From Macrostomum lignano (Eukaryota), in NCBI GenBank assembly GCA_002269645.1, contig NIVC01001435.1:62001-126000 (forward strand): a stretch of 64,000 nt of DNA, in the 5' to 3' direction. The position numbers and the translations under genes were made by a program. Shown here one piece after another: positions 1,891 to 49,361 of this stretch. Every line of letters starts with the position of its first letter. The first letter of the stretch is position 1. The notes under the pieces were generated by a model. The model made no database searches. It had not been told where the DNA came from and saw nothing but the letters and a program-made list of their open reading frames with translations.

Positions 1891-1991
1891 TAGACAAAAT
1901 AGCAAATGCCTCAAGCAGACAGCAACAGTTCATTCAAAGTGGAACTAAGCAGAACCAGCAGTCCCAGCCAATCAGCGCATCCTGAGAGCAT

Positions 1992-4653
<2,662 letters not shown>

Positions 4654-5835
4654 GATAGCCAATTTAAGCAGATTTAAATGAAAAATAAACTTCTTTTAAA
4701 ATGAATATTTTCGAGCTTGACAAATCTAACTAAATTAAATATCGTAGATGCAGTTGCAGATTACTAGGACTTATTAATCTGTCGTCACCCGTACCGCTAA
4801 CTTCAAGCGCCAGGCTTCGCTCATCATAATAATGCCTCCGAAATAAAGAAGTTAAAATATTGGATACTTTAGCAACCGATAAAAACAAAGGTAATACATA
4901 GAAACTGTTATAAAGCTTCTATTGTACGTTGCCTGCTTCTTTTAAGCATAAACTGATATTTGAACTGATTTAAGGAGCAAAACTAAATGAAAAAACGAAT
5001 TTTGTGAAAAGCGGCTGCAGGTTTACTTAATTGTGAATCATCAGTGAGCAATCTGCGGTGTCTTTAATATTTCTGGCAACCTTGCGAAATTACTATTCTC
5101 AGATTCACGCCTAACTTAATTTTACTGTAGCCTCTCCTTCTTAAAAAGTACTACCAATTCTATAGAAAACTGAAAACCTGTATTATGGCTTTCGGGCTTG
5201 ATTTATTCGTATCCATGTGCATATGCATATCATTTTTAGTAAATTTTCTAAGTGACTACAGTGACTTACAGTGACTTTTAAATTGTTGAAAATAGAAAAC
5301 TTTTAGCGAAACGTGAACAACTACAATCCAATTTGCAGCAGTTACATGTGGCTAATAGTGTATTTAATCAAATTTAAAGTATGCATATACGAACTAGCAT
5401 ACATCTACAATTAGTTTCTATTTGTAATTGCAATATAGAAAAAAATACATATTTGCTACTTGTGCATGTACGTGTATTTTTCGAAACAGTTCGGAATATC
5501 ATTCAACTTCTTTTCATCCCAAATCAACTTCTGTTAATCGTAGCCTAAATATTCTCGTTCATTCATATTCACAGACTTGTCCCAAAAATGTCCCTAGGAA
5601 TGTACAAGAGAAGTACATTCCATATAAATTTCATTCAAATCCATCTATCTAATCCTGCAGCCAATCATCTTATTCTCAAATATTAGGCAAACATGAGCAT
5701 GCAAACATACATGCATACACGCAAAACATACACGCATAAGTGTACAATGCAATGATGCGAGACTTAAAAGTACACGTACGATTACAAAGGAAAGAATCTC
5801 TGATATGCAAAAAACGTCTCACTATTTTATAGTCT

Positions 5836-14800: not shown

Positions 14801-17250
14801 ATCTCTAGTGTACTCTGGCGATCTCTAGTGTACTCTGGCGATCTCTAGTGTACTCTGGCGATCTCTAGTGTACTCTGGCGATCTCTAGTGTACTCTGGCG
14901 ATCTCTAGTGTACTATAGTTATCTCTATCGTATTTTTAATGTAACCCACTAGTAGCCTAGTTGCTGACTAATGTGCCTCACACAGATATATTAATGTCAA
15001 TTTCACCTGAACCAGCAGGCCATGAAACAAGTATAGCTTAGCCTTGCCACATCTTAATTGAATCTAATTAAAGCCGTGCAAAGCTGGTTGCAGCCGCTTT
15101 CGCCACTATCAGATTTCAGGTGTGTGTGTGAGTGTGTGGGTGTGTGAAAAACCATGATGCATATGGAAAAGCTGCGCTCGTACTGGCTGCTTTATTGCAC
15201 TCAGAATTAGACAGCACTGGCTAGCAACTTTCTGATGCTGAGTTAGCCAGCCTGTTTATAAATATGCCATGTTTACACTATTGACAATTCCATAGTCCTC
15301 TGCCAGAATAGCTAACGTACAGTAGCTGTGCAGGCGCTATTCGATTCAAGTTGAGGTGTCCAAGGGTTCTGAAAAACCTATTTGTCACAAAACTCGCGAG
15401 CTGTCTCACTGAAGAGTCACAGAGGGGTAAGCTGTCTCACTGAAGAGTCACAGAGGGGTAAGCTGTCTCACTGAAGAGTCACAGAGGGGTAAGCTGTCTC
15501 ACTGAAGAGTCACAGAGGGGTAAGCTGTCTCACTGAAGAGTCACAGAGGGGTAAGCTGTCTCACTGAAGAGTCACAGAGGGGTAAGCTGTCTCACTGAAG
15601 AGTCACAGAGGGGTAAGCTGTCTCACTGAAGAGTCACAGAGGGGTAAGCTGTCTCACTGAAGAGTCACAGAGGGGTAAGCTGTCTCACTGAAGAGTCACA
15701 GAGGGGTAAGCTGTCTCACTGAAGAGTCACAGAGGGGTAAGCTGTCTCACTGAAGAGTCACAGAGGGGTAAGCTGTCTCACTGAAGAGTCACAGAGGGAT
15801 AAGCTGTCTCACTGAAGAGTCACAGAGAGCTGTGGCGACCAGTCACTTACAGTATGTTTCAGTATTATTCATTTTGTCTTAGTTTTTAGACAAGGTAAAA
15901 TTTTACCAAAATCGCACTGGACTTACCAGTTGAACACTTCCGCCTAACATCTGAGCCACTTTTGACGGGGTCACTGGAATACGTTGAGTTGCGCTCTTTT
16001 GTAATGCAGTCACAATCATTAGTGAGCAGCACCTGAATTACCGCATCAGGTTAATTAGCCTTCACCCAAAGCTTACTTGAGGATATTCGTCTGGCCAGCC
16101 TCTCCTGAGCTGATTCAAGCTTCATCCTCTGCCACTTATTGTCCGCCACAGGGTACAGGCTGACCTGATAAAGCGGCCAGCTGGACCTGCCGAACCTCAA
16201 CCTGTGCCCAGTGGGTCGAATATGACCCAGGTACGTCGAACTGATTGGCAGAGTGCCGCTGCAAGTTGGGCGAATTTGGCTTGCAGTCTGGGTCTCGTGT
16301 GTTTGTCTGTGTGTCTTTGTATCTGTGTGTCTAGTGTGTCTATCTGTGTGTCTTTGTGTCTGTGTGTCTAGTGTGTCTGTCTGTGTGTCTTTGTGTCTGT
16401 GTGTCTCGTGTGTCTGTCTGTGTCTTTGTGTCTTTGTGTCTCGTGTGTCTGTCTGTGTGTCTAGTGTGTCTGTCTGTGTGTCTTTTTGTCTGTGTGTCTA
16501 ATGTGTCTGTCTGTGTCTTTGTGTCTGTGTGTCTAGTGTGTCTGTCTGTGTCTTTGTGTCTGTGTGTCTAGTGTGTCTGTCTGTGTCTTTGTGTCTGTGT
16601 GTCTAGTGTGTCTGTCTGTGTGTCTTTGTGTCTGTGTGTCTAGTGTGTCTGTCTGTGTGTCTTTGTGTCTGTGTGTCTCGTGTGTCTGTCTGTGTCTTTG
16701 TGTCTGTGTGTCTCGTGTGTCTGTCTGTGTGTCTTTGTGTCTGTGTGTCTAGTGTGTCTGTCTGTGTGTCTTTGTGTCTGTGTGTCTAGTGTGTCTGTCT
16801 GTGTGTCTTTGTGTCTGTGTGTCTAGTGTGTCTGTCTGTGTGTCTTTGTGTCTGTGTGTCTAGTGTGTCTGTCTGTGTGTCTTTGTGTCTGTGTGTCTAG
16901 TGTGTCTGTCTGTGTGTCTTTGTGTCTGTGTGTCTAGTGTGTCTGTCTGTGTGTCTTTGTGTCTGTGTGTCTAGTGTGTCTGTCTGTGTGTCTCGTGTGT
17001 CTGTCTGTGTCTTTGTGTCTGTGTGTCTAGTGTGTCTGTCTGTGTGTCTCGTGTGTCTGTCTGTGTCTTTGTGTCTGTGTGTCTAGTGTGTCTGTCTGTG
17101 TGTCTCGTGTGTCTGTCTGTGTCTTTGTGTCTGTGTGTCTAGTGTGTCTGTCTGTGTGTCTCGTGTGTCTGTCTGTGTCTTTGTGTCTGTGTGTCTAGTG
17201 TGTCTTTCTGTGTGTCTCGTGTGTCTAGTGTGTCTGTCTGTCTGTCTGTG

Positions 17251-17285
<35 letters not shown>

Positions 17286-17302
17286 GTGTCTGTCTGTCTG
17301 TG

Positions 17303-17347
<45 letters not shown>

Positions 17348-19647
17348 GACTGTCTGTCTGTCAGCCTGTCTGTCAGCACTCACTGCAGCAGTCCGGAGCA
17401 AAGCGACGCAACCCCTGGCTGGTCAGCTGGTTCATCGGTCCTGTTGCCCACAGGCCACACGGAGAAGTGGCACTGAGAGCGGTGCCTAACGAAACCCGAC
17501 CCCCTTCGATGCGGAAGTCCCATCAGTCTCACCGGAAATTCTTCCGGTCTGTAGGAGTAAATTGGATCGATAGTTGAAGCATGTCACCTGAGCTGCATTT
17601 TAGTAACTATTTGATCTTGTCAAAGGTGACGGTTTATCCGCTGCTGATTGACAGCTTTACCTCTTCACTGCCAGATAAAATATGTAGCGCCGTAGTGAAG
17701 GCATCGCCACCACTTCCAGGGCCAGGTTCGTGCCGGTGCCCTGAAACAGTTCAACATTTTTTGTCATTCGAATTGCTGCAACTGCTTCCAGCTGGAATCC
17801 TTGCGGCTAGATCAACTGCTTCCAGTTGGAACCCTTGTGACTAGATCAACTGCTTCCAGTTGGAACCCTTGTGACTAGATCAACTGCTTTCGGCTGGAAC
17901 CCTTGCGACTAAACAAATGGAATGAATCTGAGCTAATGGCATCTGCTTCCGGCCAGGAAACTACTTAAAGATTTTCTTACTGAGTACGAGCTTGTCTGCA
18001 GGTTAATTACAACTTGAAACTATTAGTAAAATTTATGATTCAGAAATTTCTAAGGAAAGAGTTTGCAACTGCATCGGGCTAAGAATTGAAGTACACATAA
18101 GCTTGCAGGCATTTTTCTGCGCTTTGCTTTTGAAAAGTTTGTAGCGGGCGGCCTTTGGCTGGGAGTGCAGTTTGGGTGCTGGCGGGCTCCGTGTTTCCGC
18201 CGCCTGTATTTTCACCTTTTCAAATTTGCAGTTGGCGGTTTCAAAACTTGTGCATTCGAATGCATCAATAGTGATTCTGGCGTTTCTGCGTTTTCAGCTT
18301 ATGTTCTTGGCTGGAGATGTTCGATTTCAGTGTGAGATTATCAGTGAGATTATCAGTGTGAGATTATCAGTGTGAGATTATCAGTGTGAGATTATCAGAG
18401 TGAGAATACCAGTGTGAGATTATCAGTGTGAGATTATCAGTGTGAGATTATCAGTGTAAGAATATCAGTGTGAGAATATCAGTGTGAGATTATCAGTGTA
18501 AGAATATCAGTGTGATATTATCAGTGTGAGAATATCAGTGTGAGATTATCAGTGTAAGAATATCAGTGTGAGAATATCAGTGTGAGATTATCAGTGTGAG
18601 ATTATCAGAGTGAGAATACCAGTGTGAGATTATCAGTGTGAGATTATCAGTGTGAGATTATCAGTGTAAGAATATCAGTGTGAGAATATCAGTGTGAGAA
18701 TATCAGTGTGAGAATATCAGTGTGAGAATATCAGTGTGAGAATATCAGTGTGAGAATATCAGTGTGAGAATATCAGTGTGAGAATATCAGTGTGAGATTA
18801 TCAGTGTGAGATTATCAGTGTGAGAATTGGCGGTCCTTAGCACCAGTTTTTCACCCCCACGAATCCACTCTCACTTTGTCAAGCGCGACCTCTGCGCCAT
18901 CGTTGGCGCGATGCGCTCGGATCCGGGCGAGAAAAGCCTCCGGTTCAGCTGAAATTCCACAGTGAGTGGGCGGATAGGTGGGCGGCTTGGCAACTATGTG
19001 GATTAGATCATCCAGTTTGAAATCTGTTTCTTAACGATAACGAATTTGGCCAACTTTTGGCAATAGTCAAAAGCGTTTAAAAATTCAGCTATTTCTACTG
19101 GCTCATTATTTATAGCGGATATTCTCCTGACTATGATCCAATGACAGTAATAAATAGCGATATGCTTTCACACTGATAATATCACTGATAATCTCACACG
19201 GAATATCTCATACTAATAATCTCGAACTGATAATCTCACACTGATATTCTCACACTGATATTCTCACATTGATATTCTCACACTGATATTCTCACACTGA
19301 TAATCTCACACTAATAATCTCACACTGATATTCTCATACAGCTCAAATGAAAGACTATCAAGATTATCCACACAAAACGAATAGAATGCACAAAATGTAC
19401 ACAGATACAAATGAATGCTCAAGTTTTTCAAATTTTCATATTCCGTACCATAAATAAAAATATCGCAAATGCGATGCAAAGAATCGCATTGACGCTACGA
19501 ACAGTGGGTAAATTTTATAATCGAATTGTGCTCTAACTTACATCCGGCGCACTGAGAGGAGCGGACACTGAGGCACAGGAACACCAGGCTGAGGTAGGAG
19601 GAGAGCAACGGATGCCGATAAAATTTTAGTGAGAAATGAAGGCTCAT
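5836..19647 (-). CDS. ADAM-family (reprolysin M12B) membrane metalloprotease-disintegrin
   Basis: Exons read by hand: 19647-19542 (signal peptide MSLHF...[15 protein letters not shown]); 18948-18875; 17740-17661; 17548-17384 (prodomain CHF...VASLCSGLL); ~16258-16060 and ~16030-15925 (boundaries uncertain); 14444-14325 (furin site [12 protein letters not shown]); 13447-13376; 12883-12705; 10008-9924; 9482-9088 (zinc motif [12 protein letters not shown], Met-turn [18 protein letters not shown]); 8066-7772 (disintegrin QCDLPEFC); 7257-6551 (Cys-rich, EGF-like, [26 protein letters not shown]); 6481-5836 (Pro-rich tail). Any exon within 7300-7770 is unresolved. Confidence 0.93.
6030..6370 (-). repeat. 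Coding 18-bp minisatellite encoding ([12 protein letters not shown])n in the ADAM cytoplasmic tail
   Basis: Plus-strand units GGTTTTGGCACAGGTGTC and variants, about 17 copies, in frame in the last exon. Confidence 0.9.
8090..8932. repeat. 54-bp minisatellite in ADAM intron
   Basis: Unit GCAGAGGGGAGGGAGGGACAGCGTAGCTTAGCGGTAGGCGCGTCTGACTCTATC, about 15 copies. Confidence 0.96.
9500..9865. repeat. 18-bp minisatellite (CTAATGGGTCACTGTGTT)n in ADAM intron
   Basis: About 20 almost perfect units. Confidence 0.97.
10040..12640. repeat. 27-bp minisatellite (GATGATGGATTCTGGGGATAGTTAGTT)n in ADAM intron
   Basis: About 95 units, with recurring variant blocks forming higher-order repeats. Confidence 0.97.
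12985..13348. repeat. 33-bp minisatellite (ATCAAATCACTAAGGATCGGGGAAGAGGGTAAC)n in ADAM intron
   Basis: About 11 units. Confidence 0.96.
13741..14035 (+). mobile_element. tRNA-derived SINE with CORE-like domain (copy A)
   Basis: A-box-like TAGCCCAGTGGTTAGAG and B-box GGTTCGATTCC, then GTGTCCTTGAGCAAGACACTTAACTCT...TAAAATGGGT, which resembles the MIR/CORE motif. The body is shared with copies at 36922 and 43066. Confidence 0.85.
14490..14915. repeat. 20-bp minisatellite (TACTCTGGCGATCTCTAGTG)n in ADAM intron
   Basis: About 21 nearly perfect units. Confidence 0.97.
15400..15828. repeat. 31-bp minisatellite (AGCTGTCTCACTGAAGAGTCACAGAGGGGTA)n in ADAM intron
   Basis: About 14 nearly perfect units. 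Confidence 0.97.
16290..17376. repeat. Complex TG/TCTG microsatellite-derived array in ADAM intron
   Basis: GTGTCTGTCT/TAGTGTGTC units, grading into (TCTG)n. Confidence 0.95.
17805..17912. repeat. 34-bp repeat, about 3 copies, in ADAM intron
   Basis: TAGATCAACTGCTTCCAGTTGGAACCCTTGTGAC repeated. Confidence 0.85.
18327..18826 (+). repeat. 14-bp minisatellite (ATCAGTGTGAGA(T/A)T)n
   Basis: About 35 units in ADAM intron 2. Confidence 0.96.
19168..19338 (-). repeat. Same 14-bp minisatellite in inverted orientation
   Basis: Units A(A/T)TCTCACACTGAT are the reverse complement of the 18327-18826 array. This copy lies in ADAM intron 1. Confidence 0.92.
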
Positions 19648-19865
19648 TCTAGTATCGAAAGTACGGCTTTGCAACGTTGTTTATATTCGATATAATTTTC
19701 TACGCTGTAAAACTACTTAGTAAGGACCAAATTTAAATTGGCGCCAAACTTATCTTCGAAGTCGTTGTCTACACACGAGCTCGTTGTGCAAAGAAAGCCG
19801 AAAAATCAGTACAAACAAACAAACAAACCAACAAACTAATTAACAAACTATTTAATTAACTAGCC

Positions 19866-24920
<5,055 letters not shown>

Positions 24921-28200: not shown

Positions 28201-29516
28201 AAGTTTTATTTAATACCAATGAAGCAAGCCAAAACCAGCACTCGTCACTTTCACTTGTCACTTGTCACTTATCACTTGTCACTTGTCACTTGTCACTTGT
28301 CACTTGTCCCTGTAAAATTTCACACCTCTACAAAATTTTAATTAGCTTCAAAGCTGTGCTTCTAATTAGGTAATATCAGCACTCGTTTTAAAGCTGAAAA
28401 CGTAAATTCAAGTCACAGAAAATGTCAAAGTAATCAAAAGTATTGTTTGGTTTTATAACGTGCAGAATAGTGGGGGAATTTTTCATTTACAGCAAAGATC
28501 AACGGAAGAAAATTGTACTTTAATTAACTATTCGTTGTAGCAGTGCGATATCGCACCTTCAAAGATAAAAGAGTTTTCTGTCGAGTGCACACGCCAATGG
28601 TTAAAATCTGAACAAAATGCTACTCAAACAAATTTAAGGCAGGTTTTCACCATTTTTTGCCTCACGTCAGTCAGTCATAGATCGACCTTAGGCACAGGGT
28701 CACAGGTGCGTCCAAAGGTGATAAATAACTTGATTGGAAAGGTGCGTCCACCTCCAATTCACGAGCACAGGTCAAAGCAGGTACACACAAGAGAGAAAGG
28801 ATAGAGAGAGTACGCTCGCAGACAGTTAAAAAACGGTGTTTTCCGACCTCGTTTAAATTGTGAGAATAGTATCAATGGCGGCTGTTAACAGAAAAAGCAA
28901 TGGTGTGGTAGGGGACGGATCAAAGATATACATGTACATGTCTTGGACCTACAGGGGTAAATAGAGCCCAAATAATGCAACTACATTAAGAAATCCCTTC
29001 GGTGTTTACCGAGTTACAATCCGTAGAGCCTCAAGAGTTAAATGCTCGGGATTCAGGTACCCAAGACTCCGATGTCGCTACTCTCCTGGCATCATTCGTG
29101 CCTCCCTGCCCTCACGCTGACTCAACTCTCTCACCCGGCTGCACCAGCGTGAAGCAGAGGCTTCCCAGTCCGAACAGCGCCGCAGCGATGGTCTTCACCA
29201 CTCGGAAGCCCCAACGGTCCAGGATGAACCCGGATGCGACATTGCCGAACGGTGTCACCACCTGGGTGATGGTGAACGCTAGAGTGATCTGATCGCGCGT
29301 TGCAGAACAGCTAGCGGTGGCGTTGGCGCCAGCTGTGACATTGGGTGCGCACAGGTGGCCGTAGACACCGCGGTCATTGAGCACGGGAACCAGAGAGACC
29401 ACGCCATAGAATAGACCGGAGAAGAGCAGAGTCTCCAGCATGGCGAGGCCGATGGTGACGGCGATTCGCAGGTTGGAAGGCGCTGCCAGAGGCGGCTTCT
29501 TCTCGCTGTCAGACAT
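25252..29516 (-). CDS. SLC43-like MFS transporter (LAT3/LAT4/ENBT1 family), paralogue 1, 7 exons
   Basis: Exons 29516-29135, 28164-27998, 27076-26834, 26749-26488, 26255-26066, 25982-25865 and 25392-25252, with consistent phases. The motifs LETLLFSGLFYGVVSLVPVL...LC, GFILDRWG and SNLQL match SLC43 architecture (recalled, not searched). The protein ends DTRL*. Confidence 0.85.
28245..28306. repeat. 7-bp microsatellite (CACTTGT)n
   Basis: About 8 units in intron 1 of paralogue 1. Confidence 0.9.
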
Positions 29517-30000
29517 GGCTAATGTACTTTACTGTTTCTTCAACAGCTGGAGCTCAGTTAATAGGAAAAAGGTATTATTTTAAGTTGAGCAGCAATAATT
29601 TATATTAGCAGCACAGCTCAATCGAGGGGTTGGTTGTCTTGAATAGCCGCGTAGTATTTTATCTGTGTGCGTGCAGTTTGCGGAGGGTAGAGAGGGGAAA
29701 ACCGCAGCCAGTGAGAACAGGTTACAGACTTGCACTTAGCTGCCGACTTTGAAGAGTTCTTTAACTATACCGACTAGTGCTGGATCAAGCGCACCGAAAT
29801 ATGAGGGCTATCTGTGTCCTCTAATATCCATAGAGATTTTTTAACAGTCATTGTTGAATGAGCATACTCCTAACCAATGTGTTTATTAATTTTTCCGCGC
29901 CAAGATTCTATTGGTCGCAAAGTGCAGTGCCCAATGAGAAATTGAGGTATAGTAGTTCTAGATTTGATACTGCTTTATTATTTAAATTATTGAAAGGATT
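29517..30000 (-). promoter_or_regulatory. 5' flank of SLC43 paralogue 1, duplicated upstream of paralogue 3
   Basis: Near-identical to 47961-48365 and contains CCAAT/ATTGG boxes. Confidence 0.6.
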
Positions 30001-30937: not shown

Positions 30938-31563
30938 ATCTTTTGTGAGACAATATTTTTTGTAATAACGTCTCTGAAAATTCACCGTAATTGTCTTGAA
31001 TTCCTTGTTTTATTTGTTGATCTTACGTGCAAGGATTAACGAATATCTGGAGCGTCTGGTGGAATTAATCCACTAAGAACCCAACCAGTACACGAACACC
31101 AAGGACCACTGTAGTATAACAGTACCGAAAACTCAAAGATCGTGTAAATTTTTGAAGGCCAATTTCCCCGAAAAAATGTACACTGCGACAAAAAAGTCAC
31201 AGTGTAATTCTGACATGTCGAATCTGTTCTCTTTTTGAAATCCCAAACACGCCGTTTAGGCTCTCAATCTTATAAAAACAGGCCGGATCGCTCAACAACG
31301 GTTGAGCACTGGGTACAGCTAAATATTTTCGAATCTGCTTTCCGATTTTCTACAGTGGCGAACTGCGTCAAAAAGCCGCTTTTGTAAAGAAAAAGAAACA
31401 AAATGATTTAGTTAAGAAGCTCCCTGTTAATTAAAAAACGGTTTATTTAACTTTTCATTTCTACAAGCGCACATTACTTTGAAATTATTTCAGAACGATA
31501 GTGATAGTCTGGTTTTAGTCTGGTCCGTTGTGCAACGCTGGACGGGAGCAGAAGCATAGCGTT

Positions 31564-31833
31564 CTATTTGCCGAATATTTTGCGGGCGACTCGGCCGTAA
31601 AATCCTAAGACATTGCGAAGCTCCCTCTTTAACCTGAAATTCTTTAACCTAAAACGGAACTTCTTCTGCAGCTCAGCGGCCCTCTCGTCCGTCATCTCCG
31701 GCTCGTCCATGTCGGCCAGAGCCTCCAGCGCCGCCATCGCCTCCGCGTCCTCCTCCGACATCTCCTGGCTGTTGGGTCTGGCGGCGGCCAGAGCTGCGCA
31801 CAGCAGGAGCCCGAGAACGAACTGAAACCTCAT
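31564..31833 (-). CDS. Intronless secreted cationic peptide precursor (putative antimicrobial peptide, arminin-like architecture), 89 aa
   Basis: Hydrophobic signal MRFQFVLGLLLCAALAAA; acidic pro-region with 13 D/E; dibasic KK; cationic FRFRLKNFRLKRELRNVLGFYGRVARKIF; terminal GK amidation signal. A TATA-like CATAAATA lies at 31933-31926 and AATAAA at 31447-31442. GC-rich codon usage. The antimicrobial function is inferred. Confidence 0.8.
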   Translation of the reverse strand: MRFQFVLGLLLCAALAAARPNSQEMSEEDAEAMAALEALADMDEPEMTDERAAELQKKFRFRLKNFRLKRELRNVLGFYGRVARKIFGK

Positions 31834-31925
31834 GCTTGCTGGGTTGAGTTGTGTAGCCGGATGAAGCTGAGAGAATCGCTATTTAGCTTAGGCTTGGTTG
31901 ATCATTTCGGCTCGGAGAGGCCCTG

Positions 31926-31933
31926 TATTTATG
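31926..31933 (-). promoter_or_regulatory. TATA-like box of the peptide gene
   Basis: CATAAATA on the minus strand, about 95 bp upstream of the ATG. Confidence 0.5.
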
Positions 31934-32429
31934 CTGCAAAAATTGGCACGTTTTTCCGGTCGTGTGAATTAGGAGGTGGCAGGACCTCTTTTCACGTGCT
32001 TCAGAGTGCTTAGAGTTCGCCAATTGAACCCATAGCAAAATGCTTTGTGCCCGAGGCAACATTTCGAGACATTGAACTTGAATTACAATTTGTACTTTCA
32101 GCCTATCATTATGTTGCAGCAGGGTTGTCTAAAATGCGAGCTTAATTGAAACGCATAAGAGTGCAGAGCACTTGAGATGGGTTCGAGAGCACAAAGCGCG
32201 ACAATGGCAAATGCATCTGAGAGAGAATCTCAGGCAATTTCTCTTTCTCTCTTTCAGATGCATTTATGGCTGGCCACTAGGATTGGATTCATTCCAAGGG
32301 CATTTTTGTAGCCTATAATTTTTATTAACAACCTGCGTTTATCTGCATGTGTGTTAAAAAGCCATTGCTTCCAATTGACGGGGACTCTAAAGTTTCACTA
32401 AATATTCCTAGTAGCTTCGTGTCTTTTTT

Positions 32430-33440
32430 ATCCCCAGTCTCCTGTCTCTGTTATCTAGTCTCCTTTCTCTGTTATCTAGCCTCCTGTCTCTGTTATCTAG
32501 CCTCCTGTCTCTGATATCTAGTCTCCTGTCTCTGATATCCAGTCTCCTGTCTCTGATATCCAGTCTCCTGTTTCTGTTATCTAGCCTCCTGTCTCTGATA
32601 TCTAGTCTCCTGTGTCGATTATCTAGTCTTCTAAGTCCTGTCTCATGTCTCGTATATCCAGTCTCCTGTCTCTGTTTTTCAGTCTCCTGTCTCTGATATC
32701 TAGTCTCCTGTCTTGGATATCCAGCCCCTTGTCTCTGATATCTAGTCTCCTGTCTCGGTTATCTAGTCTTACAAGTCCTGTCTGATGTCTGTGTTATCTA
32801 GTCTCCTGTCTCTGTTATCTAGTCTCCTGTCTCTGTTATTCAGTCTCCTGTCTCTGATATCTAGTCTCCTGTCTTGGATATCCAGCCCCTTGTCTCTGAT
32901 ATCTAGTCTCCTGTCTCGGTTATCTAGTCTTACAAGTCCTGTCTGATGTCTGTGTTATCTAGTCTCCTGTCTCTGTTATCTAGTCTCCTGTCTCTGTTAT
33001 TCAGTCTCCTTTCTCTGATATCCAGTCTCCTGTCTCGGTTATCTAGTCTTACAAGTCCTGTCTGATGTCTGTGTTATCTAGTCTCCTTTCTCTGATACCC
33101 AGTCTCCTGTCTCTGTTATCTAGTCTCTTGTCTCTGATATCTAGTCTCCTTTCTCTGATATCCAGTCTCTTGTCTCTGATATCTAGTCTCTTGTCTCTGA
33201 TATCTAGTCTCCTGTCTCTGATATCCAGTCTCCTGTCTCGGTTATCTAGTCTTACAAGTCCTGTCTGATGTCTGTGTTATCTAGTCTCCTTTCTCTGATA
33301 CCCAGTCTCCTTTCTCTGATATCCAGTCTCTTGTCTCTGATATCCAGTCTCTTGTCTCTGATATCCAGTCTCTTGTCTCTGATATCCAGTCTCTTGTCTC
33401 TGATATCCAGTCTCCTGTCTCTGATATCCAGTCTCCCATC
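32430..33440. repeat. Degenerate 21-bp minisatellite (AGTCTCCTGTCTCTGATATCT)n
   Basis: About 45 variable units with internal block duplications. Confidence 0.93.
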
Positions 33441-34172: not shown

Positions 34173-36827
34173 AAAGGGGATGTGAACTTCAGAGTCTAAA
34201 TAGAGCCTGAAGCATTGGGCCCGATTTTTCTACGCTAATCCCTTCATTCGGAACCAAATAGCTCCCGTTTTGCCAAAAACCCGACCACTTTAGCATTTGG
34301 GGGATCTCTATGGGGAGAAATGGGATAAATGGGGATTTCATGTGATGGAGATCTACCTGTGTTATTTTGATTTTAATATATTTCGATTGTTGCGCTCAGG
34401 AAGGCTCAGACTTCAGTAAGTAGCTTCAGTACGACCAAATGGCCTGCCCGAAGTTTGATGGAAGAAGTGCAGCGCCGTCTTTGAATGGCCAGGTTGACGG
34501 AGATGCGGCCATCTTAGTCACGGGTAATGGACGTGAGAAGGCGTCGAGTCAGCTCGTTGTCTTTGGGGCCATGCTTTCCATCGTCCTTCGCGATGCCGAG
34601 AACTTCGAGGAGCCGTTGTCGTTGTTGATGTTGAGGTAGGTGTTAGTGACGAGGACCTGAGAGGTCTTCGAGGACCCGAGGAGGAAGCTGTTGATGCTGT
34701 GGGCATCCGTGTCAGTGATAGCATTGTTGAGGATGGCTCCGAAGGGCGTCAAGTAGGCCGTTAGAATCGGTCAAAGAGCGAGGGCAGGAACGGCAGAGCC
34801 GGTGAGTAACTGGTTCACGTCGCCACCGAGAATGATATTGAGGGTACCGTCTGCATCATGATCGGGCGGAAGGTTGCAGACGCTGTTGTTGACACTGCTG
34901 AAGGTGTTAAGGACATCTTCAGGGAGCTTAACGGCCGGTATATATATCGGGGCTGCTAGCTGGTCGGAGGCGAGGGCTGCGATTGTCCAGCGACGGCCGT
35001 CTGGGGCGTGGAGGTCGAAACTGACGAGGTCCGCAGTAATCTGACGCTTGGACTCCGAGTGGAAGGTGGGGTGGCTATCGTTAGTCTCTTGGCGGCTTTG
35101 AGGCCAAGCTTGTGGGCAACTTTGCCGTCGAGATGCGAGTACGAGCGTATGAGCAGCCTGAGTCGAGAAGAATTGTGCAGTCGACCGAGCGGCATCTTTC
35201 GGGTTGACGGCCTTTGCCTGGAAGGTAGCCATGATCGTTGGCACGAGGCCTCCGTCGGCTGCGGGACTAGGGAGTTGGCTGTCTCTTTGGAGTCGGCGTC
35301 ACAACCTGAATTAACGTCGGCGTTTTGGCCTGTCTTAGACGAGCGATGGCTGGAGCGGGCGCTGTCAATGGTGGCCTCTGCAGCGAGGTGTGGTTTGTGA
35401 GGTCGCCTAAGGCAGTTGCGGCAAATGTTCTTGTTCCGTACTATTTTAAGCCGGGCATCGGGCTTGCGGATGTTGCAGAAAAACATGGGCATGGTCGGAG
35501 CTGTCGCAATAGAGGCATGGGCGGCTGGGCTTATGCTGCTGCTGGTTGGCGGTGGGAACGAAGCATTCGGAGGGACGAGGCGAGGGTTTGGCGCCCGTGT
35601 GAGGAGTGGTGGACTGGCGTCGATCACTGGGGTAGCGCGCTGCTGGCGGCCGAGAGTCAGTGTTGCCCAGGAAGCCGGCGGAAGCAAAGGGCGCTGTCGG
35701 AGTTGTCGTGGCGGCAGCCCTGGGAGTCCTAAGCTTAAAGCCAAGGTGGCTCTGGAGCTGTGCCATAGTGGGCATGAGAGGCTTCCCGCTTTCAGCATGG
35801 AGGTTGCGGATCTCGTTTCGGAGCTCGATCGAGAGGCGGCTCCAGATGGCGTAGACGTGGCTGTCGATGGTGCAGGCGAGCTCGCCAAGGCGAGGGCTGG
35901 CCGGTAGCGAGTCGGAGGGCGTCGGTGAAGGTCTCGAGCTCATCTATGTCGGAAGCGGAACTGCAGAATAGTGCGAGGAGGCGTTGGAAGCAGGCGTTAT
36001 TCTGCTCCTCGGCGTCCGCGTAGTTAGCCTGGAGGACGCGGCAGGCCTCGGGTTGGCAGGTGTCGGGGGCGCCCAGCTTTCTTAGGGCGGGGCCGGATAG
36101 GAGACATCGGAGTGCCTCGAACTTGTCGACGTCGTTGAGGCTGGATCGGTCGACACGGTAGAGGAAGGTGTCCCAGAACCCGGGCAATGCGGCAGGGTCG
36201 GTGCCGTCGATTGTCGGGAGACGAACCTTCAAAAGGACAGTGGAGCGGATGAGAGCGGCCGGATCGCGATCGACGCTGATTTCGGGGCAGGATGGGTATT
36301 AGCAGTGAGCTGTTCTACGAGAAGCTGATTCTGTTGCATCATCGCAGTCATGAAGGTGAGGAGAGGTTGACGTCGTGCAGCAGGTGACGAGGCAGTGATC
36401 GGGGATGGGACGGGAGGATCCATAGTCGGGGTGGCTGACGTTTCCGGCGGCGGGCAGCTGGGTTCGACGTACGGCTGCCCGCGGCAGGGGCTGCTTCAGC
36501 AGAGGCTGTAGTGCAGTCGTCCTGGGACTGATGGATCTGGTCGCCAGATGGGTCAGTCGTTGATCGCGTGATGACCATGTTAACGCTCTAGTCATCTGGT
36601 CATCATGGTCATCTCGTTATTTAAGAATTTGAAGCTCCTAGAGCCTTAAGTTCACATGAAATCCCCATTTATCCCATTTCTCCCCATAGAGATCCCCTAA
36701 ATGCTAAAGTGCAGTCGGGTTTTCGGCAAAACGGGAGCTATTTGGCTCCGAATGAAGGGATTGGCGTAGAGAAATCGGGACTCAATGCTTCAGGCTCCAA
36801 TTTGACTCTGAAGTTCACATCCCCTTT
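34173..36827 (-). mobile_element. BEL/Pao-type gag-protease fragment enclosed by ~175-bp inverted repeats
   Basis: Inverted repeats at 34173-34345 and 36652-36827. Broken minus-strand ORFs give an MVITRS start; RLPTIDGTDPAALPGFWDTF...LNDVDKFEALRCLLSGPA (DUF1759-like gag); CLYCDSSDH and ICRNCLRRPH zinc knuckles; and NIILGGD...TPFG (DUF1758-like protease region). At least 4 frameshifts. No RT and no LTRs seen. Confidence 0.8.
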
Positions 36828-36921: not shown

Positions 36922-37172
36922 AATCCCACTGGAACAATTTGTGTCCTTGAGCAAGACACTTTAACTCTGCATTACTTCAGTTCCCCCAGCTGTAAAATGG
37001 ATATTCTGCATTAGCTGGGGCAATTGAGGATGTGTGGCGACCCCCCAGTCCTTGGACTGAACAGCCGTACGCAGCCTTCAGATGCGCCGCGCAATAGCTG
37101 CGGCTGAGCTGTCGGTTGCACATCTGGTCCGATTGGGTCAGGTGTAATCAGTTATTATTATTATTATTATAG
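36922..37172 (+). mobile_element. CORE-like SINE, 5'-truncated (copy B), with (TTA)n tail
   Basis: Matches copies A and C from AATCCCACTGGAACAAT onward. Confidence 0.85.
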
Positions 37173-39022: not shown

Positions 39023-41530
39023 TTAAAAGTCGGCCTTGTTGACAACAACTGGCTGCACCTGGTGCCCACCTGTCGGGCGAATATTTCTGAGCAGCAGAAC
39101 CAGCGGGTGGATCAGGGACACGCAGGTGAGGCCGGCAAAAATATAGTTAATCTGCGGGAATTCACGGCTTCTATAAGAGCTGAGACAGAGTCCTGGTTTA
39201 TTGGACAAGAGAATATTTTGAATCTGAGCTCACCGTGTCCGGATTTCGTGAGTCCTGCATCCAGTTTATGAGCGGCACAGTCAGAAACATGAATGGCGCC
39301 GCAGAGCAGATGATTCCAGTGTACACGATGCCAAAGTTCTCCGGCTTGAAGCTGCAAGATCGGATTAGTGAGCATGGGTAAAACAGAAATAGTAACAAAC
39401 TGACTGACAGACGACCCGACATTGGAGCACTTCAATCAAGACTCGGCATTATTACCGAGTTCAAGTGGAAGAGCGAGCCAACCTAGACTCACACAGAAAT
39501 GCAGTAGTTGCCGAGTGTAGAGTACATGAACGCCCGGAACACTGAGATTGCAACAAAAGTAGGAATGAGGATTCCTGTGCTGTTTGGCAGCATCATCAGA
39601 CAGCTGATCGCTCCGATGAGAGCTGTCAAGGTCAGCGTGGTCACAGTGTTGAGTTTGTAGGACCGGTGGTTGTTTTGGCGCACTGAAAAATGTCAGAAAC
39701 ATTTATTCGACAGAAGTTTCCTTATTCTCCTGTTAGGAAGTAATGACCATTAGCTGGTATGTTGCATCCTCACGTGTCGGTATGAACCTCTTCTGCAGGT
39801 CCAGCAGCAAACCGGGAAGCAGCGAAACCAGCGGACTTGTCAGAAAGAAATAGCCAAACATGGTAGCGTAGTGCTCGACCAGATCCTTGTCTACATCGGT
39901 GATCAAGTCCACGTATGGATTTAGGAAACCGAAGAAATAGTTGAGCCGCAGATTGTTGCAGATCATCCACAGGATCATGAGGAAGAAGTCTGTTGTCAGA
40001 AGGAACTGTATGGCCGGGCACCGAAGCTGCTTTTCCTGAAACAAAAACAATTTTTTTGATCCGCATGCACTAAACTCGACTCTTCACATAATTTAACTGT
40101 TTCGATTGAAACTTAGTGTACAATATTCATCGCTAAAGAGTTACCTAACAATTTCCCCTGACAAGTCGATATTGTATTTTATAACTAGAATGAAAGCTAA
40201 AATCTGAAGAGAGTTCCTACCTCTATAGCATCGGATGCCTCCTCTGACACGACACTGGATTCCGTAGTCCTCGGATCTTGCTGCTGCTGGGCCTCCTTCT
40301 TAGACTTGTGGCCGCGCAGCGAAGACAAGCTGATTGTCTGGGGCGCCAGGCCCGAGTCCAACTGGAGCCGGTTGTACTTTCCCGGGTAGAGGGCGACTGT
40401 CAGGCTAATGGTCAGCACGCCGAGGCCTGTGTACACTCCGAATGCGATGAAGCTGTTAACGTTGCTGCGAGATATTTGCTGAATGAGAGGTTAAAGATAA
40501 TGGGGTGACTTTGATCTTGAGTATCGTTGTTCGAGATACTCCTTGTACGAGAGCACAATCCCTCTGCAGATCCTACGTTATAATCTGAATTGCAAGCTCG
40601 TCTATTGATACAAACGAGCAAAAAGCTCTGATATGGTTAACTAGTATTGGCTATGTTTAGCTACTATTGTCGGTATTGGCACTCTAATCAGCTACCCAAC
40701 TGCTCACCACAAGCACTGATGTCACCATAGTGCAGGCATCGAACAGGCCGCTAATTATCGAAGCAACCACGAACGGAAACTTCACCATGGTTGACAGCTG
40801 CAGGTTGGACATGACCACCTGAATACCTGAGATTCCCAGCATCATTGTGCCAGGAAATATCAGCCAATCGACGCCTGAAAGATTGTTTCCAGGGCGATCA
40901 TTCCACAGATTTAACTGCTGGGAGAGACAACGTTTATAAATGGCAATTAGATAATGAAGTCGTAAATTCATTAAAATGACTTAAACTCCATAATACACTG
41001 TCAAGGAGGGCTGCGATAGATTAAAAAGTTTTTATAGCATGGTACCAGCAGACTATTTTTAGATAGAAAATATGAAAGTTTTGTTCCCCTCTGTGGGTGC
41101 TTTGCTTTCTATGCTCTTCTCTTTGCATTTATTAGTGCCATTTCTCACCTGGCTGCACCAGCGTGAAGCAGAGGCTTCCCAGTCCGAACAGCGCCGCAGC
41201 GATGGTCTTCACCACTCGGAAGCCCCAACGGTCCAGGATGAACCCGGATGCGACATTGCCGAACGGTGTCACCACCTGGGTGATGGTGAACGCCAGAGTG
41301 ATTTGATCGCGCGCTGCCGAACATCTAGCGGTGGCGTTGGCGCCAGCTGTGACATTGGGTGCGCACAGGTGGCCGTAGACACCGCGGTCATTGAGCACGG
41401 GAACCAGAGAGACCACGCCATAGAATAGACCGGAGAAGAGCAGAGTCTCGAGCATGGCGAGACCGATGGTGACGGCGATGCGCAGGTCGGAAGGCGCTGC
41501 TGGAAGTGGCTTCTTCTTGCTGTCTGACAT
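39023..41530 (-). CDS. SLC43-like transporter, paralogue 2, 7 exons
   Basis: Exons 41530-41149, 40874-40708, 40478-40221, 40035-39774, 39682-39493, 39351-39234 and 39151-39023. Same exon structure and phases as paralogue 1. The protein ends NKADF*. Confidence 0.85.
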
Positions 41531-43065
41531 GCTTAAAGAAGCGTTTGTGTCAGTAAGTTGGTCTTAAAGTCGAGGTTGCACTTGAACTGAGCGTAAAATG
41601 AACTTTGCCTAAACTTTAATCATTCAGTTTTATAGCTGGTAGTTACTTTCGGCTTTGCAGATATATGCATGTACGCTCGCTATGCGACAGCAAGATTGCA
41701 AACCATTAGAAATCCAACTGACTGGATTCAATCTTGGCGGAGGCTCAAAAGGGGTTCGGTTGGGTTCGCTCAGTGTGGCATGGAGTTTTATCTTTGCTTG
41801 TAATTTGCCAAGCAGAGTGAGGGCAAGGCAGATATTTTTCAGGAGAAGCCTGCTCTCACTTGGAAAGTTGTAATTTACGAGCGCGACTGCACTGAATTAC
41901 GTTTTAGTAGAATCATTCACGCCAACCAGTGAGTGATCCAGCGAAAAGAGTTGCAGGTTCTGCTGTTTGGAGCTAAGCAGTCGTACTCTACAAGCAGACT
42001 TCGTGGCAATGAATCAAGAGAAAATTGATTGCATTTTCTTGTGACTAAACGCTAGCAAGCGCATATCGTTTCTCACAAGTAGTTAAGAGAAACTGTTTTC
42101 AACTGTCTACTATTAGTAATAAGAAAGTATAACAAGATTATCTAAAACTTTAACAGAATGCCTCTTATACAAGAAATGGTTATCAAAATTACTCTGCCGG
42201 ATGAAGCATCTCTTTATTTGCGGGACAAGAATCCAATTATTGTAAAGGATACTTTTGCGAAAAATAAAAGACTTTTGGAACGTAAGACGGTGGAATTCGA
42301 TATGGGTCTAGAAAATAGACTAACAGTTTCTGAGGAAATGGCTCGAGTCTATGAGCATGCTAAATTTCTTTCAAAGTGATTTGCTAATTGGCGATCCTGC
42401 TCCCAGGGCCGGACTCACCCGGCTGCTTCGCTCCTCTTCCTCTTGCTCATAAATCGCTATGATTACTCGTAAAACTTCGAGTCACGAGTGGCTACCTCGG
42501 TGGAAACCTCTGTGTGACTTGTTAGCCTTCAACTCTCACTGCATCAACTGCACCGGGGCCCGCTGCTCAGTATCCATCAGTTTGCTATTGAAATAAAAGC
42601 AATGCAAGTATTTTATAAACACTTTAGTCCCACCCTTTGAGCTGAAGACGCGCTCGAGCATGAGATTTCTTAGAGGTTGAGCAAGTCGTTTTGTTAAAAA
42701 TTGAAACCATCACGACAGTTTCGAATCAATTCATCGTGGCAAAATTCAAGATTTGGGATAAACCAATTTGGGATAAACACCCTTCCGTATTTATGGAAAT
42801 AAAAATTGCAATTGAGTCCGATCCAGCTGTTGCTAAATGTAAACGTTATTTTTTGACATTAGCTCGTAAACATCAGAATCGAGCAAAATAGAATTCACAC
42901 TATTATTAGAATGAAGTCGTAACTGTATCTTACAACATCTGCGTTGCCCAAGCTGTCAAGAAGTTGCTATTACATCAATTGGAGAAAACCACTGACCCAA
43001 AACACTGGATGATTTATTCGCTGTCAATGCAATCCAAAGTTAGTTTCAATAAATAACTATTAACT

Positions 43066-43395
43066 GGAGGGGTTGTAGCCTAGTGGCTACAGAGCCGGAC
43101 TCACGACTGGAAGGTCGGCTGTTCGATTCGCAACCCACTCAGAACAATTTTGTGTCCTTGAGCAAGACACTGAACTCTGCATTGCTTCAGTTCACCCAGC
43201 TGTGAAATGGGTGCCAGCATTAGCTGGGGTAATTGAGGGTGTGTGGCGACCCCCCAGTCCTTGGACTGAACAGCCGTACGCAGCCTTCAGATGCGCCGCG
43301 CAATAGCTGCGACTGACGTCTCGGTTGTACATCCGCCTAATTGGGGCAGGTGTAATCAATATTAATAATAATAATAACTATAATAATAATATTAT
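43066..43395 (+). mobile_element. tRNA-derived CORE-like SINE, full length (copy C), with (TAA)n tail
   Basis: A box TAGCCTAGTGG, B box GTTCGATTC, shared body, AATAAT-rich tail. Confidence 0.87.
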
Positions 43396-46500: not shown

Positions 46501-47960
46501 AGATACACTCTAGTGTCATTCCATCATTTTCAAGATACACTCTAGTGTCATTCCATCATTTTCAAGATACACTCTAGTGTCATTCCATCATTTTCAAGAT
46601 ACACTCTAGTGTCATTCCATCATTTTCAAGAAACACTCTAGTGTCATTCCATCATTTTCAAGATACACTCTAGTGTCATTCCATCATTTTCAAGATACAC
46701 TCTAGTGTCATTCCATCATTTTCAAGATACACTCTAGTGTCATTCCATCATTTTCAAGAAACACTCTAGTGTCATTCCAATAACAAATCAACGAAAAGTC
46801 AGCATGCAAAATACGAGCTAGTTTTGGAAGGTCAATTTAGGGTCAGGCACGGCAGACAAGCTCCAGCCTTTCTGTAGAGGTTGTGAGAAGTCGTGTCAGT
46901 TCCGATAAAACTAATCATATGATTGAAGCAGCCACCAATGCAGGATAGTCTAGAGGCGTAGCGCTGTACAGAGCCTCGGATCGGATGAGGGTACATTTCT
47001 AGACAGGATTGCAGACGTACAAAAGCTTTGTGACTGCGTAACAAGTGCGTTTCATTCCATAGATTCGACTCCGTCCGATTCAAACAACTAAGTAACAACT
47101 CTAGCGACTGAGCCTGAGCGAAATTTCTATTTTTAGCTGACAACAGGAGGCGTAGCAGCAGAAGCAGCTCAAACCAGACCGTCTCCCAGTGCAAATTAAA
47201 AGTGCGAGGCTTAAGCCAAGGCAAGACAACCAAAATAACTTATGTCAAAGAGTACTTCATGTACTATCCAGCCCTCGGCTTCGTTCGCGTTACAATAATA
47301 GAGTCTACCTTTGAGTACTGGAGTTGCTGACTGTTATATTGTAAATAGTTGTGATAATCAGGTTTAACTACTACAGTTAAGAAGGTTTCTAAAGCAAAAA
47401 TTAAGCCGTAAAATATGACTATGCTGTGTCTTTAAAAAACAGCTGACTCCTAAAGATTCGTAGACGAGGGACAATGGTGTCAATTAGCATTTATTCAGTC
47501 GCTTTTTAAATTTACGTAGCCGTGACTCAGTACAGCGCATCCCCGATATCAATCTCTCCCGCCATTCACACCACTCACCCGGCTGCACCAGCGTGAAGCA
47601 GAGGCTTCCCAGCCCGAACAGCGCCGCAGCGATGGTCTTCACCACTCGGAAGCCCCAACGGTCCAGGATGAACCCGGATGCGACATTGCCGAACGGCGTC
47701 ACCACCTGGGTGATGGTGAACGCCAGAGTGATCTGATCGCGCGCTGCAGAACAGCTAGCAGTGGCGTTGGCGCCAGCTGTGACATTAGGTGCGCACAGGT
47801 GACTGTAGACACCGCGGTCATTGAGCACGGGAACCAGAGAGACCACGCCATAGGATATACCGGAGAAGAGCAGAGTCTCGAGCATGGCGAGGCCGATGGT
47901 GACGGCGATGCGCAGGTCGGAAGGCGCTGCCAGAGGCGGCTTCTTCTCGCTGTCAGACAT
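43519..47960 (-). CDS. SLC43-like transporter, paralogue 3, 7 exons
   Basis: Exons 47960-47579, 45863-45697, 45557-45312, 44903-44642, 44164-43975, 43866-43749 and 43659-43519. The frame is intact and the protein ends DTRF*. Confidence 0.85.
45977..46779. repeat. 32-bp minisatellite (CCATCATTTTCAAGATACACTCTAGTGTCATT)n
   Basis: About 25 nearly perfect units in intron 1 of paralogue 3. Confidence 0.97.
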
Positions 47961-49361
47961 GGCTGATGTACTTTACTGTTTCTTCAACAGCTGGAGCTCA
48001 GTTAATAGGAAAAAGGTATTATTTTAAGTTGAGTTGTTTTAAGCGGTTTGCGGAGGGTAGAGAGGGGGAAAACCGCAGCCAGTGAGAACAGGTTACAGAC
48101 TTGCACTTAGCTGCCGACTTTGAAGAGTTCTTTAACTATACCGACTAGTGCTGGATCGAGTGCACCGAAATATGAGGGCTATCTGTGTCCTCTAATATAG
48201 AGATGTCCTCTAATATCCATAGAGATTTTTTAACAGTCATTGTTAATGGAGCGTACTCGTACTAACCAATGTGTTTATTAATGTTTCTAGCCAAGATTTT
48301 ATTGGTCGGAAAGTGCAGCGCCCAATGAGAAATTGAGGTATAGTAGTTCTAGATTTGATATTGCTTAAATGTTTTAAATTATTTAATATTGCTCAATGTG
48401 TTATAAAATTCTTTTAAATACAATTTTGTTTATATTATAATTACTATTTACATACCTACAAATGTGTAATAATTTTGATACCAGGTTCGGGGTTCGGGGT
48501 TAGGTGTTCGGGTTTGGGTTTTCGGGTCGGGTTTAGGGTCGGGTTTTCGGGGTTTTTGGGTTCAAAGGAAATATAAACTTTAGCTATTTTAAAAATAAAT
48601 TTCTCCCAATGTCGTTATGAAACGCTTTTTAAGTATAAAAAGGCGAATATCTAAACTTCGAAAAACCGAAATCAATGCCAATTACCAAGTCTTCTAAACT
48701 GCGCCCATTACATGTAGTCCCCATTTGGTCGAACCTATGCTATGCAATTGTTATAAATAATTATAATAGTAAATAACGACCAATTTTTTGTTTTTGAGGT
48801 AAATGCAAAGTTTTTAATTAAAAAATTTAGGGTGTTCAGCCTTTATTATTTATTTATTTTTCTTTATTTAATTTATTTTTCCAAAAGCACAATATAATTT
48901 TTATGCCTTTATGCTACTGGCATTGCAGCAGGGAGGGTACAGAATATCATTTCTATGAGAGGAGATGTTTATACTTCTATTAGCACTGAACAATTTTAGG
49001 GAAGATCTTTCTGGCCAGTGAGGAATCAAGCGCGCCACTACAGACAAAAATGAGTGCTACGAGGGATACTCCAAAAGTTTTGCAATTCGACTAGTTTAAG
49101 TTACTACTGTCAAATTTCTCTATTATAATCTTTCAAAGTAGGCTCCCCAGAACTGAAAACACTTGTGCGCTCGTCCGAGCCACTTGTTTATGAGGCCCTG
49201 AAACTCTTTAATTAGGAAGCTACCAATCGCTTTCTTCGACGCCTGCTCAAGCTCCTCGTCGGACTGAATCCTGCGCCCCCTAAGCGACTTTTTGATTTCT
49301 GGAATAAGTCAGAAGTCACAGAGGGCGAGGCCTCGGGAGTAGGGCGGGTGTGGTAGCGTTG

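Follow-up and report, generated by a model that had tools for sequence, protein, structure and literature searches.

A small secreted prepropeptide gene of Macrostomum lignano with an arminin-like layout, and the undescribed multigene family to which it belongs

We analyzed a 64-kb stretch of Macrostomum lignano DNA (the window) that carries, on its minus strand, a short open reading frame (ORF) for a putative secreted peptide precursor. A preliminary description, made from the letters of the DNA, had presented this ORF as an intronless, arminin-like antimicrobial peptide precursor inside a transporter cluster. Based on translation, database searches and alignment with related copies, the ORF was shown to be a functional-looking member of an undescribed, Macrostomum-restricted multigene family of small, apparently secreted prepropeptides. 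The 89-aa ORF, its segments, the 13 acidic residues, the +9 tail, the GK end, the TATA-like box and the polyadenylation signal were all recovered as first described. The gene comprises the following features:

31947..31957, minus strand: proximal promoter motif GGAAAAACGTG, specific to the family, 114-124 nt ahead of the ATG, where conservation among paralogues begins
31925..31933, minus strand: TATA box CATAAATAC, 92-100 nt ahead of the ATG and kept by 7 of the 9 aligned copies
31834..31900, minus strand: inferred 5' untranslated region (UTR) of ~65 nt, with the start site assumed ~25-30 nt past the TATA box
31564..31833, minus strand: complete coding sequence, 89 codons plus TAG, from translation, with paralogues found by tblastn and blastn
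31780-31833, minus strand: predicted signal peptide MRFQFVLGLLLCAALAAA, near-invariant across the family
31666-31779, minus strand: acidic pro-piece RPNSQ...AAELQ, 38 aa with 13 Asp/Glu, net charge -11, from translation and charge count
31660-31665, minus strand: KK, putative processing site, kept in the six closest intact copies
31573-31659, minus strand: 29-aa hypervariable cationic peptide FRFRLKNFRLKRELRNVLGFYGRVARKIF, net charge +9
31567-31572, minus strand: Gly-Lys, putative C-terminal amidation signal; GGCAA[AG]TAG is kept in the DNA although the preceding peptide is unalignable
31564-31566, minus strand: stop codon TAG, from translation
31442..31447, minus strand: AATAAA polyadenylation signal, 117 nt past the stop

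Precursor, promoter and transcript structure

Cleavage of the signal peptide is predicted after A16 or A18 by the -3/-1 rule, and both residues belong to the set that is invariant across the Macrostomum family (Q4, L7-C12, L15, A16 and A18). Compared with the family pattern M[RK]WQ[FL][AV]LGLLLCAALA, the window signal (MRFQFVLGLLLCAALA) has F in place of W3 and retains the invariant Q4, L7-C12, L15 and A16. The AMAALEALAD motif conserved in family pro-pieces has a recognizable counterpart in the window copy, which is likewise followed by KK. Downstream of the signal peptide the precursor contains no Cys, and an internal KR in the cationic peptide could release a shorter ELRNVLGFYGRVARKIF. Pfam returned no match to the precursor (best, PepSY_2 with E = 0.34), and no second family copy was found in the 64-kb window.

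Alignment of nine copies together with their flanks revealed that conservation sets in abruptly ~130 nt upstream of the ATG. It starts with CGGAAAAACGTGCC and continues, after a gap of ~12 nt, into the TATA box CATAAATAC and a conserved 5' UTR. The motif GGAAAAACGTG occurs once in the 64-kb window compared to 0.01 expected occurrences, and lies upstream of every paralogue copy in loci L001-L005, including 5' fragments and a divergent contig assembled from reads; in the fetched loci it was confined to positions upstream of family copies. Exceptions to the TATA sequence are a 1-nt deletion in the L004a copy, CATGAATAC in the L004b pseudogene and the variant GCATAAATA in L005. The 5' UTR block TCTCAGCTTCATC.GGCTACA is conserved in all copies, and the forward primer of an in situ hybridization probe designed for a paralogue falls in the equivalent stretch. 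Ahead of its TATA box, locus L005 also has the promoter motif twice in tandem, as CCGGAAAAATGTG and AGGAAAAACGTGG.

The predicted window mRNA is ~475 nt long, in line with the 501-nt transcript RNA815_1838.3 of a paralogue. The probe made from cDNA of this paralogue measures 364 nt, exactly the distance between its primers in genomic DNA, so the RNA815_1838.3 copy has no intron. Because the window copy is collinear with this intronless paralogue over the promoter, 5' UTR and prepro region, and because its ORF is uninterrupted, the window gene is probably intronless too, which is well supported and agrees with what had been claimed for it.

The Macrostomum lignano family and its genomic setting

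A protein search with the window ORF returned three matches only, all of them 'hypothetical' M. lignano proteins with 77-93% identity over the signal, pro-piece and KK. Past KK, divergence from these close paralogues is complete, yet each of them ends in GK. Searching 1.84 billion representative proteins exhaustively with a profile, we recovered 10 clusters, all from M. lignano save one 929-bp contig from SRR31628392, and no protein match outside Macrostomum at E ≤ 1e-3. In the profile census, at least 19 protein clusters had the family signal peptide together with the acidic pro-piece and KK. Apart from one, the family proteins are all annotated as 'hypothetical'; two are chimeric gene models and in no member is a Pfam domain assigned to the family region. 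One chimera, P0001 (Mlig001477.g4), joins the start of L004a to L004g across 27 kb; the other, P0004 (UniProt A0A1I8JEL3), is a 634-aa 'Sushi domain-containing protein' with the family pro-piece and peptide at its end (...KKWRIRLRRIRWRKVYRYARAAYRIYRHLHGK).

Three of the copies at locus L004 (47 kb) are intact, two are pseudogenes and two more are 5' fragments. One pseudogene has lost its start codon and acquired a stop and a frameshift, while the other has a 1-nt frameshift. The fragments (L004:33393-33545 and 35036-35188) are truncated copies consisting of the promoter motif, the 5' UTR and the first nine codons (MRWQFVLGL), and pass directly into a tandem repeat that translates as QTGTDRHRQA...

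Searches of the literature on M. lignano antimicrobial peptides, neuropeptides and flatworm peptides found no description of the family, and no full text was found that names RNA815_1838 or any of eleven Mlig gene IDs from the family. Family IDs were also not found in the supplement tables of Grudniewska 2016, Grudniewska 2018, Mouton 2018 and a 2025 intestine paper, which were partly covered and count as weak evidence. The preliminary description had proposed a search for paralogues that keep the signal and pro-region but differ at the C-terminus, and these are what the protein clusters and the L004 copies supply. Its suggestion that the gene founded an undescribed family holds for the second half only: in the databases and literature searched the family is undescribed, but by sequence comparison the window gene is one divergent member, nearest to the P0002 type.

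All copies share a compact module (promoter motif, TATA box, 5' UTR, signal, acidic pro-piece and KK), which is followed by a hypervariable cassette. This cassette encodes a strongly cationic, Arg/Lys- and aromatic-rich peptide, nearly always with a Gly or Gly-Lys/Arg end. The C-terminal peptides of the family are rich in Arg, range from 8 to 34 aa and are hypervariable; 17 of 20 members end in the Gly or Gly-[KR] amidation signal. The members fall into a long subfamily with peptides of 18-34 aa, to which the window gene belongs, a short subfamily with peptides of 8-10 aa, each then followed by Gly (FVRVRVRL, IFRVRVRI, WLRVRARVRI and FVRVHVRF), and a few outliers. In the short subfamily (P0009, P0010, P0011, P0021-P0023 and P0025-P0029), hydrophobic residues alternate with Arg, and two of the peptides would be RF-amides. 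Divergent P0006, encoded at L005:360-430 on the contig from SRR31628392, has PRVRL repeats and no terminal Gly.

The two parts of the gene diverge to very different degrees. Over the prepro region, synonymous divergence (dS) between copies is 0.11-0.30 and non-synonymous divergence (dN) is 0.02-0.11, with a dN/dS ratio (omega) of 0.26-0.63; for the window acidic pro-piece compared to paralogues, dN is 0.04-0.09 and dS 0.11-0.21. The peptide region is hyperdivergent, with dS from 0.23 to saturation and dN of 0.12-0.89, while its length changes remain in frame and GK-stop is kept. At the DNA level, the window prepro region is 81-84% identical to all copies but one, the exception being the L004b pseudogene (90.7% over 214 nt). 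By blastn, the window copy is homologous to each of the other copies between 31963 and 31659, with the match ending on the first base past the KK codons. Guanine-cytosine (GC) content falls at the same boundary, from 0.66 on the prepro side to 0.43 in the tail, and the window 3' UTR is unrelated to those of other copies. The low dS of the 5' module compared with the saturated cassette suggests either gene conversion of the module or replacement or focal hypermutation of the cassette.

We also considered the window tail as chance read-through after a truncated duplication. Among 1,034 stop-terminated tails of 31 codons taken from the six frames of the window, 11 have a net charge of at least +10, and of these the tail of the window ORF alone also ends in G[KR]. 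Its residue order matches that of the P0002 tail beyond what composition explains (FR.R...RNVL; z = 3.4, p = 0.007), and synonymous differences lie beneath the GRVAR residues common to both tails. Chance read-through was rejected on the one-in-1,034 count and the order match to P0002, and by this comparison the window tail is homologous to those of the family.

Around the gene, three paralogous transporter-like first exons (MSDSEKKPPLAAPSDLRIAVTIGLAMLETLLFSG...) were identified:

29115-29528, minus strand: transporter-like first exon, sub-threshold MFS_1/Sugar_tr match
41135-41563, minus strand: paralogous transporter-like first exon, sub-threshold MFS_1/Sugar_tr match
47487-47972, minus strand: paralogous transporter-like first exon, sub-threshold MFS_1/Sugar_tr match

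Their MFS_1 matches have E values of 6e-5 to 1e-3. Judging by the three exons, a transporter gene seems to have been triplicated in tandem, with the peptide gene in between. The transporter cluster of the preliminary description is partly borne out, as three paralogous MFS-like first exons, with the qualification that the Pfam MFS_1 matches stay under the gathering score. Another neighbor is a 453-aa ORF on the plus strand (60560-61921) that matches the tubulin-tyrosine ligase (TTL) family (PF03133, E = 1.6e-90) and is apparently a single-exon TTL-like gene.

The window is also rich in repeats. A 21-nt minisatellite, AGTCTCCTGTCTCTGATATCT, with about 49 copies at 32436-33436, lies ~600 nt upstream of the peptide gene, and a related array (76-83% identical) is located at L004:11875-12961, ~1.6 kb downstream of the L004a paralogue. 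A second 21-nt tandem repeat (62 copies, 62421-63726) gives ORFs of >430 aa on both strands; Pfam DUF6944 and coiled-coil matches at 62459-63754 were rejected as probable artifacts of this repeat. An (AACT)n microsatellite of 5.1 kb (19814-24920; about 1,278 copies, 98% match) accounts for a GC skew of -1.0 in that stretch. Minisatellites with periods of 14-54 nt are unusually dense at 1-18900, among them a 27-nt unit that forms an array of 2.5 kb at 10071-12618. A dispersed ~300-nt repeat, probably a small mobile element, is found at 13743-14035, 36923-37169 and 43070-43367 of the window and again at L003:17584-17893 and L004:41731-41923 (87-91% identical).

Proposed processing and competing explanations

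Across the family, the more negative the pro-piece (charges of -4 to -16), the more positive the peptide tends to be (+1 to +16; r = -0.75, uncorrected for phylogeny). This anticorrelation fits a charge-neutralizing role for the pro-piece, and in the long subfamily the two charges sum to approximately zero. Most members of the long subfamily have their maximal hydrophobic moment at 100-105 degrees (z = 1.5-2.5). For the window 29-mer the peak is at 100 degrees with z = 1.5, rising to z = 2.3 for the 17-mer past the internal KR. An AlphaFold2 model built from a 4-sequence alignment places a helix over signal residues 2-17 and one long helix over residues 49-87, with a predicted local distance difference test score (pLDDT) of 63.

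Based on these features, we propose the following route. The signal peptide would bring the precursor into the secretory pathway, and the acidic pro-piece would neutralize the cationic tail in storage. A convertase would then cut at KK and perhaps, in the window copy, at the internal KR as well; a carboxypeptidase would trim the terminal Lys, and peptidylglycine alpha-amidating monooxygenase would turn the Gly into a C-terminal amide. The product would be FRFRLKNFRLKRELRNVLGFYGRVARKIF-amide or ELRNVLGFYGRVARKIF-amide. Most likely, such a peptide would act on membranes in host defense, with an antimicrobial or some other cytolytic effect, in the manner of Hydra arminins, and given the in situ pattern of a paralogue its site of action may be in or around gonads and gametes.

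We infer, from architecture only, that the window gene encodes a secreted, amidated, cationic, membrane-active peptide of host-defense type, and rate the chance that this is correct at about one half. The combination of a conserved prepro region and a variable peptide fits host-defense or toxin peptides and does not fit neuropeptides. By its construction, this is a new family of a known kind, built like antimicrobial-peptide genes.

Several observations weigh against a host-defense function. The helical moment of the window peptide is only modest and the structural model is of low confidence, so the alpha-helix proposed in the preliminary description agrees with the 100-degree peak but is not established by either value. 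The pairs RR, KR and RK are frequent inside the peptides and a typical convertase would cut them, which makes the final products uncertain. Omega is below 1 in the prepro and peptide regions alike; given this, the saturated dS and the uncertain alignment, we do not claim positive selection on the peptide. The window protein is missing from the protein database, where the protein search found no gene model for this copy. Finally, the sole published localization for any member is 'gonads', not gut or epidermis, and read counts for the same paralogue are low, at ~90-180 per ~50 million. Arminin transcripts, in contrast, are very abundant (PMC10945409).

The expression data come from one copy. RNA815_1838.3 corresponds to Mlig001477.g4 and to the L004a copy, onto which the primers map exactly, and its in situ pattern is listed as 'gonads' in Table S11 of Brand et al. 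2020, where it is attributed to Ramm et al. 2019. In the positional RNA sequencing of Arbore et al. 2015, it received 93 reads in head-only fragments, 94 in head plus testis, 49 in head plus testis plus ovary and 176 in whole worms, and was classed as [0,0,0], that is, without regional enrichment. Low-level transcription is therefore established for one paralogue, with the listed in situ pattern and the fragment counts at odds over where it takes place.

The main rival explanation is that these are reproduction-related secreted peptides of the testis and/or ovary, possibly serving as gamete or egg factors or as agents of sexual conflict, with divergence driven by sexual selection and not by microbes. 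The preliminary description had left such a reproductive setting out of consideration. The 'gonads' entry speaks for it, as does the cited source, which dealt with socially sensitive transcripts, and reproduction-related genes are fast-evolving in the genus Macrostomum (PMC7336406). Set against this are the [0,0,0] class, which indicates no gonad enrichment for RNA815_1838.3, and the probe itself: its 364 nt cover the conserved prepro half and would therefore cross-hybridize across the family. We regard a reproductive role as rather unlikely, though it overlaps with host defense if the peptides protect the germline or eggs as antimicrobials, for which Hydra periculins, expressed in the female germline, offer a precedent (PMC10945409).

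It is less probable still that what the window holds is a duplicate that is silent or decaying, in which a 305-nt 5' module was copied into the locus and the tail is no longer under selection. This would explain why DNA homology ends exactly past KK, with a drop in GC content and an unrelated 3' UTR, and it is compatible with the missing gene model and with the pseudogenes and 5' fragments elsewhere in the family. However, the ORF, promoter motif, TATA box, KK, GK-stop and AATAAA are all intact; the tail matches P0002 in order and is the one tail of 1,034 this basic with a G[KR] end; and both the prepro omega and the synonymous differences under the shared GRVAR argue against decay.

A cytolytic toxin released from gland cells or rhabdites against prey or predators, as opposed to an immune effector, is a comparably doubtful explanation that we place slightly lower. 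A conserved prepro region with a hypervariable peptide is also typical of venom peptides such as conotoxins, the Macrostomum peptides are strongly cationic and amphipathic, and paralogue transcripts are already present in the head fragment. Expression is low, however, the listed pattern is gonads and no gland or rhabdite localization is reported. A neuropeptide or hormone precursor, with an amidated product signaling through a receptor, is very improbable: although a signal peptide, a dibasic site and a C-terminal Gly are all present in the precursor, and the 8-10-aa amidated peptides of the short subfamily are neuropeptide-sized (FVRVHVRF-amide and IFRVRVRI-amide, with two members ending as RF-amides), conservation is reversed (the pro-piece and spacer are kept, and what varies is the putative active peptide, with lengths of 8 to 34 aa, diverse sequences and F, L, I, P or C as C-terminal residue), net charges reach +16, each precursor holds a single peptide, tandem paralogues and pseudogenes are many, and the listed in situ pattern is not neural.

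A family of amidated, host-defense-type peptides would be of interest because the immune effectors encoded by free-living flatworm genes are poorly known; the flatworm antimicrobial-like peptides found in the literature are the mesco peptides and helminth defense molecules of parasites. The family amounts to about 20 natural Arg-rich amidated peptides, from very short to medium length, that are candidates for activity tests. A compact promoter of ~130 bp driving a hypervariable peptide family is directly testable in M. lignano, for which RNA interference, in situ hybridization and stable transgenesis are available (PMC7053086). Two evolutionary questions follow: how a conserved 5' module is maintained beside a diversifying 3' cassette, and why flatworm and cnidarian peptides came to resemble each other.

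Comparison with arminins and other secreted peptides

Arminin precursors were retrieved using a doubled arminin 1a-C as query (arminin 1a, UniProt ARM1A_HYDVU). The mature peptide, arminin 1a-C, is KPWRFRRAIRRVRWRKVAPYIPFVVKTVGKK-NH2, and the arminin features given in the preliminary description are correct against it (PMC6217004). The overall layout matches closely: the window protein has 18 + 38 + KK + 29 + GK residues and arminin 1a has 18 + 39 + 31, giving precursors of 88-89 aa (88 for arminin 1a) that both consist of a signal, an acidic pro-piece and a cationic C-terminal peptide. Both peptides start with K-x-[W/F]-R-F-R, both precursors end in an amidation signal (GK in the window protein and GKK in arminin 1a) and in both cases the paralogues are clustered. 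Several Macrostomum paralogues align without gaps to arminin 1a-C over 17 residues (KKWLGRRRRVRIRWRKV compared to KPWRFRRAIRRVRWRKV), sharing KxW..RR...R.RWR[KR]V beyond composition (z = 3.1-4.3, p = 0.001-0.01). For the window peptide itself the match to arminin 1a-C does not go beyond composition (z = 1.5, p of about 0.1).

The differences concern the remainder of the precursor. Arminins have no dibasic site ahead of the peptide, and the pro-pieces of the two groups are unrelated. BLASTP gave no alignment between the window family and arminins at E ≤ 100, and arminins were absent from the results of the Macrostomum family profile search of 1.84 billion proteins. Alignment of the two families with hhalign reached 84.6% probability (E = 6.9e-6) over 75 collinear columns. 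The real local score of 26.3 compares to 14.5 ± 3.5 (maximum 28.4) when columns were shuffled within the three segments, to 20.6 ± 2.7 (maximum 30.6) when the peptide segment alone was shuffled, and to 19.0 and 27.2 when only the signal peptide or only the pro-piece was shuffled, the latter amounting to no loss. From these controls, the hhalign score stems mostly from the division into three parts, from a generic signal and from how the peptide begins.

We treat the arminin resemblance as probable convergence. Reportedly, arminins occur only in the genus Hydra, with expression in the endodermal epithelium (PMC10945409), whereas the matches to the Macrostomum family are M. lignano proteins. True homology, in which the two families predate the cnidarian-bilaterian split or moved between lineages, is in our judgment highly unlikely. 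If it were true, arminins would not be a Hydra-only 'orphan' family, and the K-x-W-R...R-W-R-K-V start would be an ancient functional core as opposed to a product of convergence.

A similar layout is described for Trichoplax, where AMP1-4 were named arminin-like on architecture alone (signal, acidic N-terminal part, basic C-terminal part and C-terminal Gly; PMC12013895). Compared with the Macrostomum family by description, these precursors are larger (150-250 aa), are cleaved at DE motifs and have epithelial expression (PMC12013895). Hydra periculins form a clustered, fast-evolving antimicrobial family in the female germline and oocytes (PMC10945409), and are thus a precedent for the 'gonads' pattern, but they contain Cys, are larger and are unrelated in sequence to the Macrostomum family.

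Within Platyhelminthes, cestode mesco-1/2/3 and trematode helminth defense molecules are, like the Macrostomum family, small secreted cationic peptides. Of the three mesco genes, two reportedly are complete and lack introns (PMC11546468). Helminth defense molecules are described as trematode-only (PMC11826375) and as without antimicrobial activity (PMC3708846). The Macrostomum profile retrieved none of these peptides in searches that included the 1.84 billion representatives, and their descriptions give no acidic pro-piece, KK site or Gly-Lys module.

A similar divergence pattern is known from amphibian preprodermaseptin-type genes and conotoxin superfamilies, in which a conserved signal and acidic pro-region precede a hypervariable mature peptide. 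In the mature part both synonymous and non-synonymous divergence are raised, and many of these peptides are amidated via a terminal Gly-Lys. Their sequences and lineages are unrelated to those of Macrostomum, and the frog genes have introns. Unlike in these systems, the conserved module of the Macrostomum family takes in the 130-nt promoter as well.

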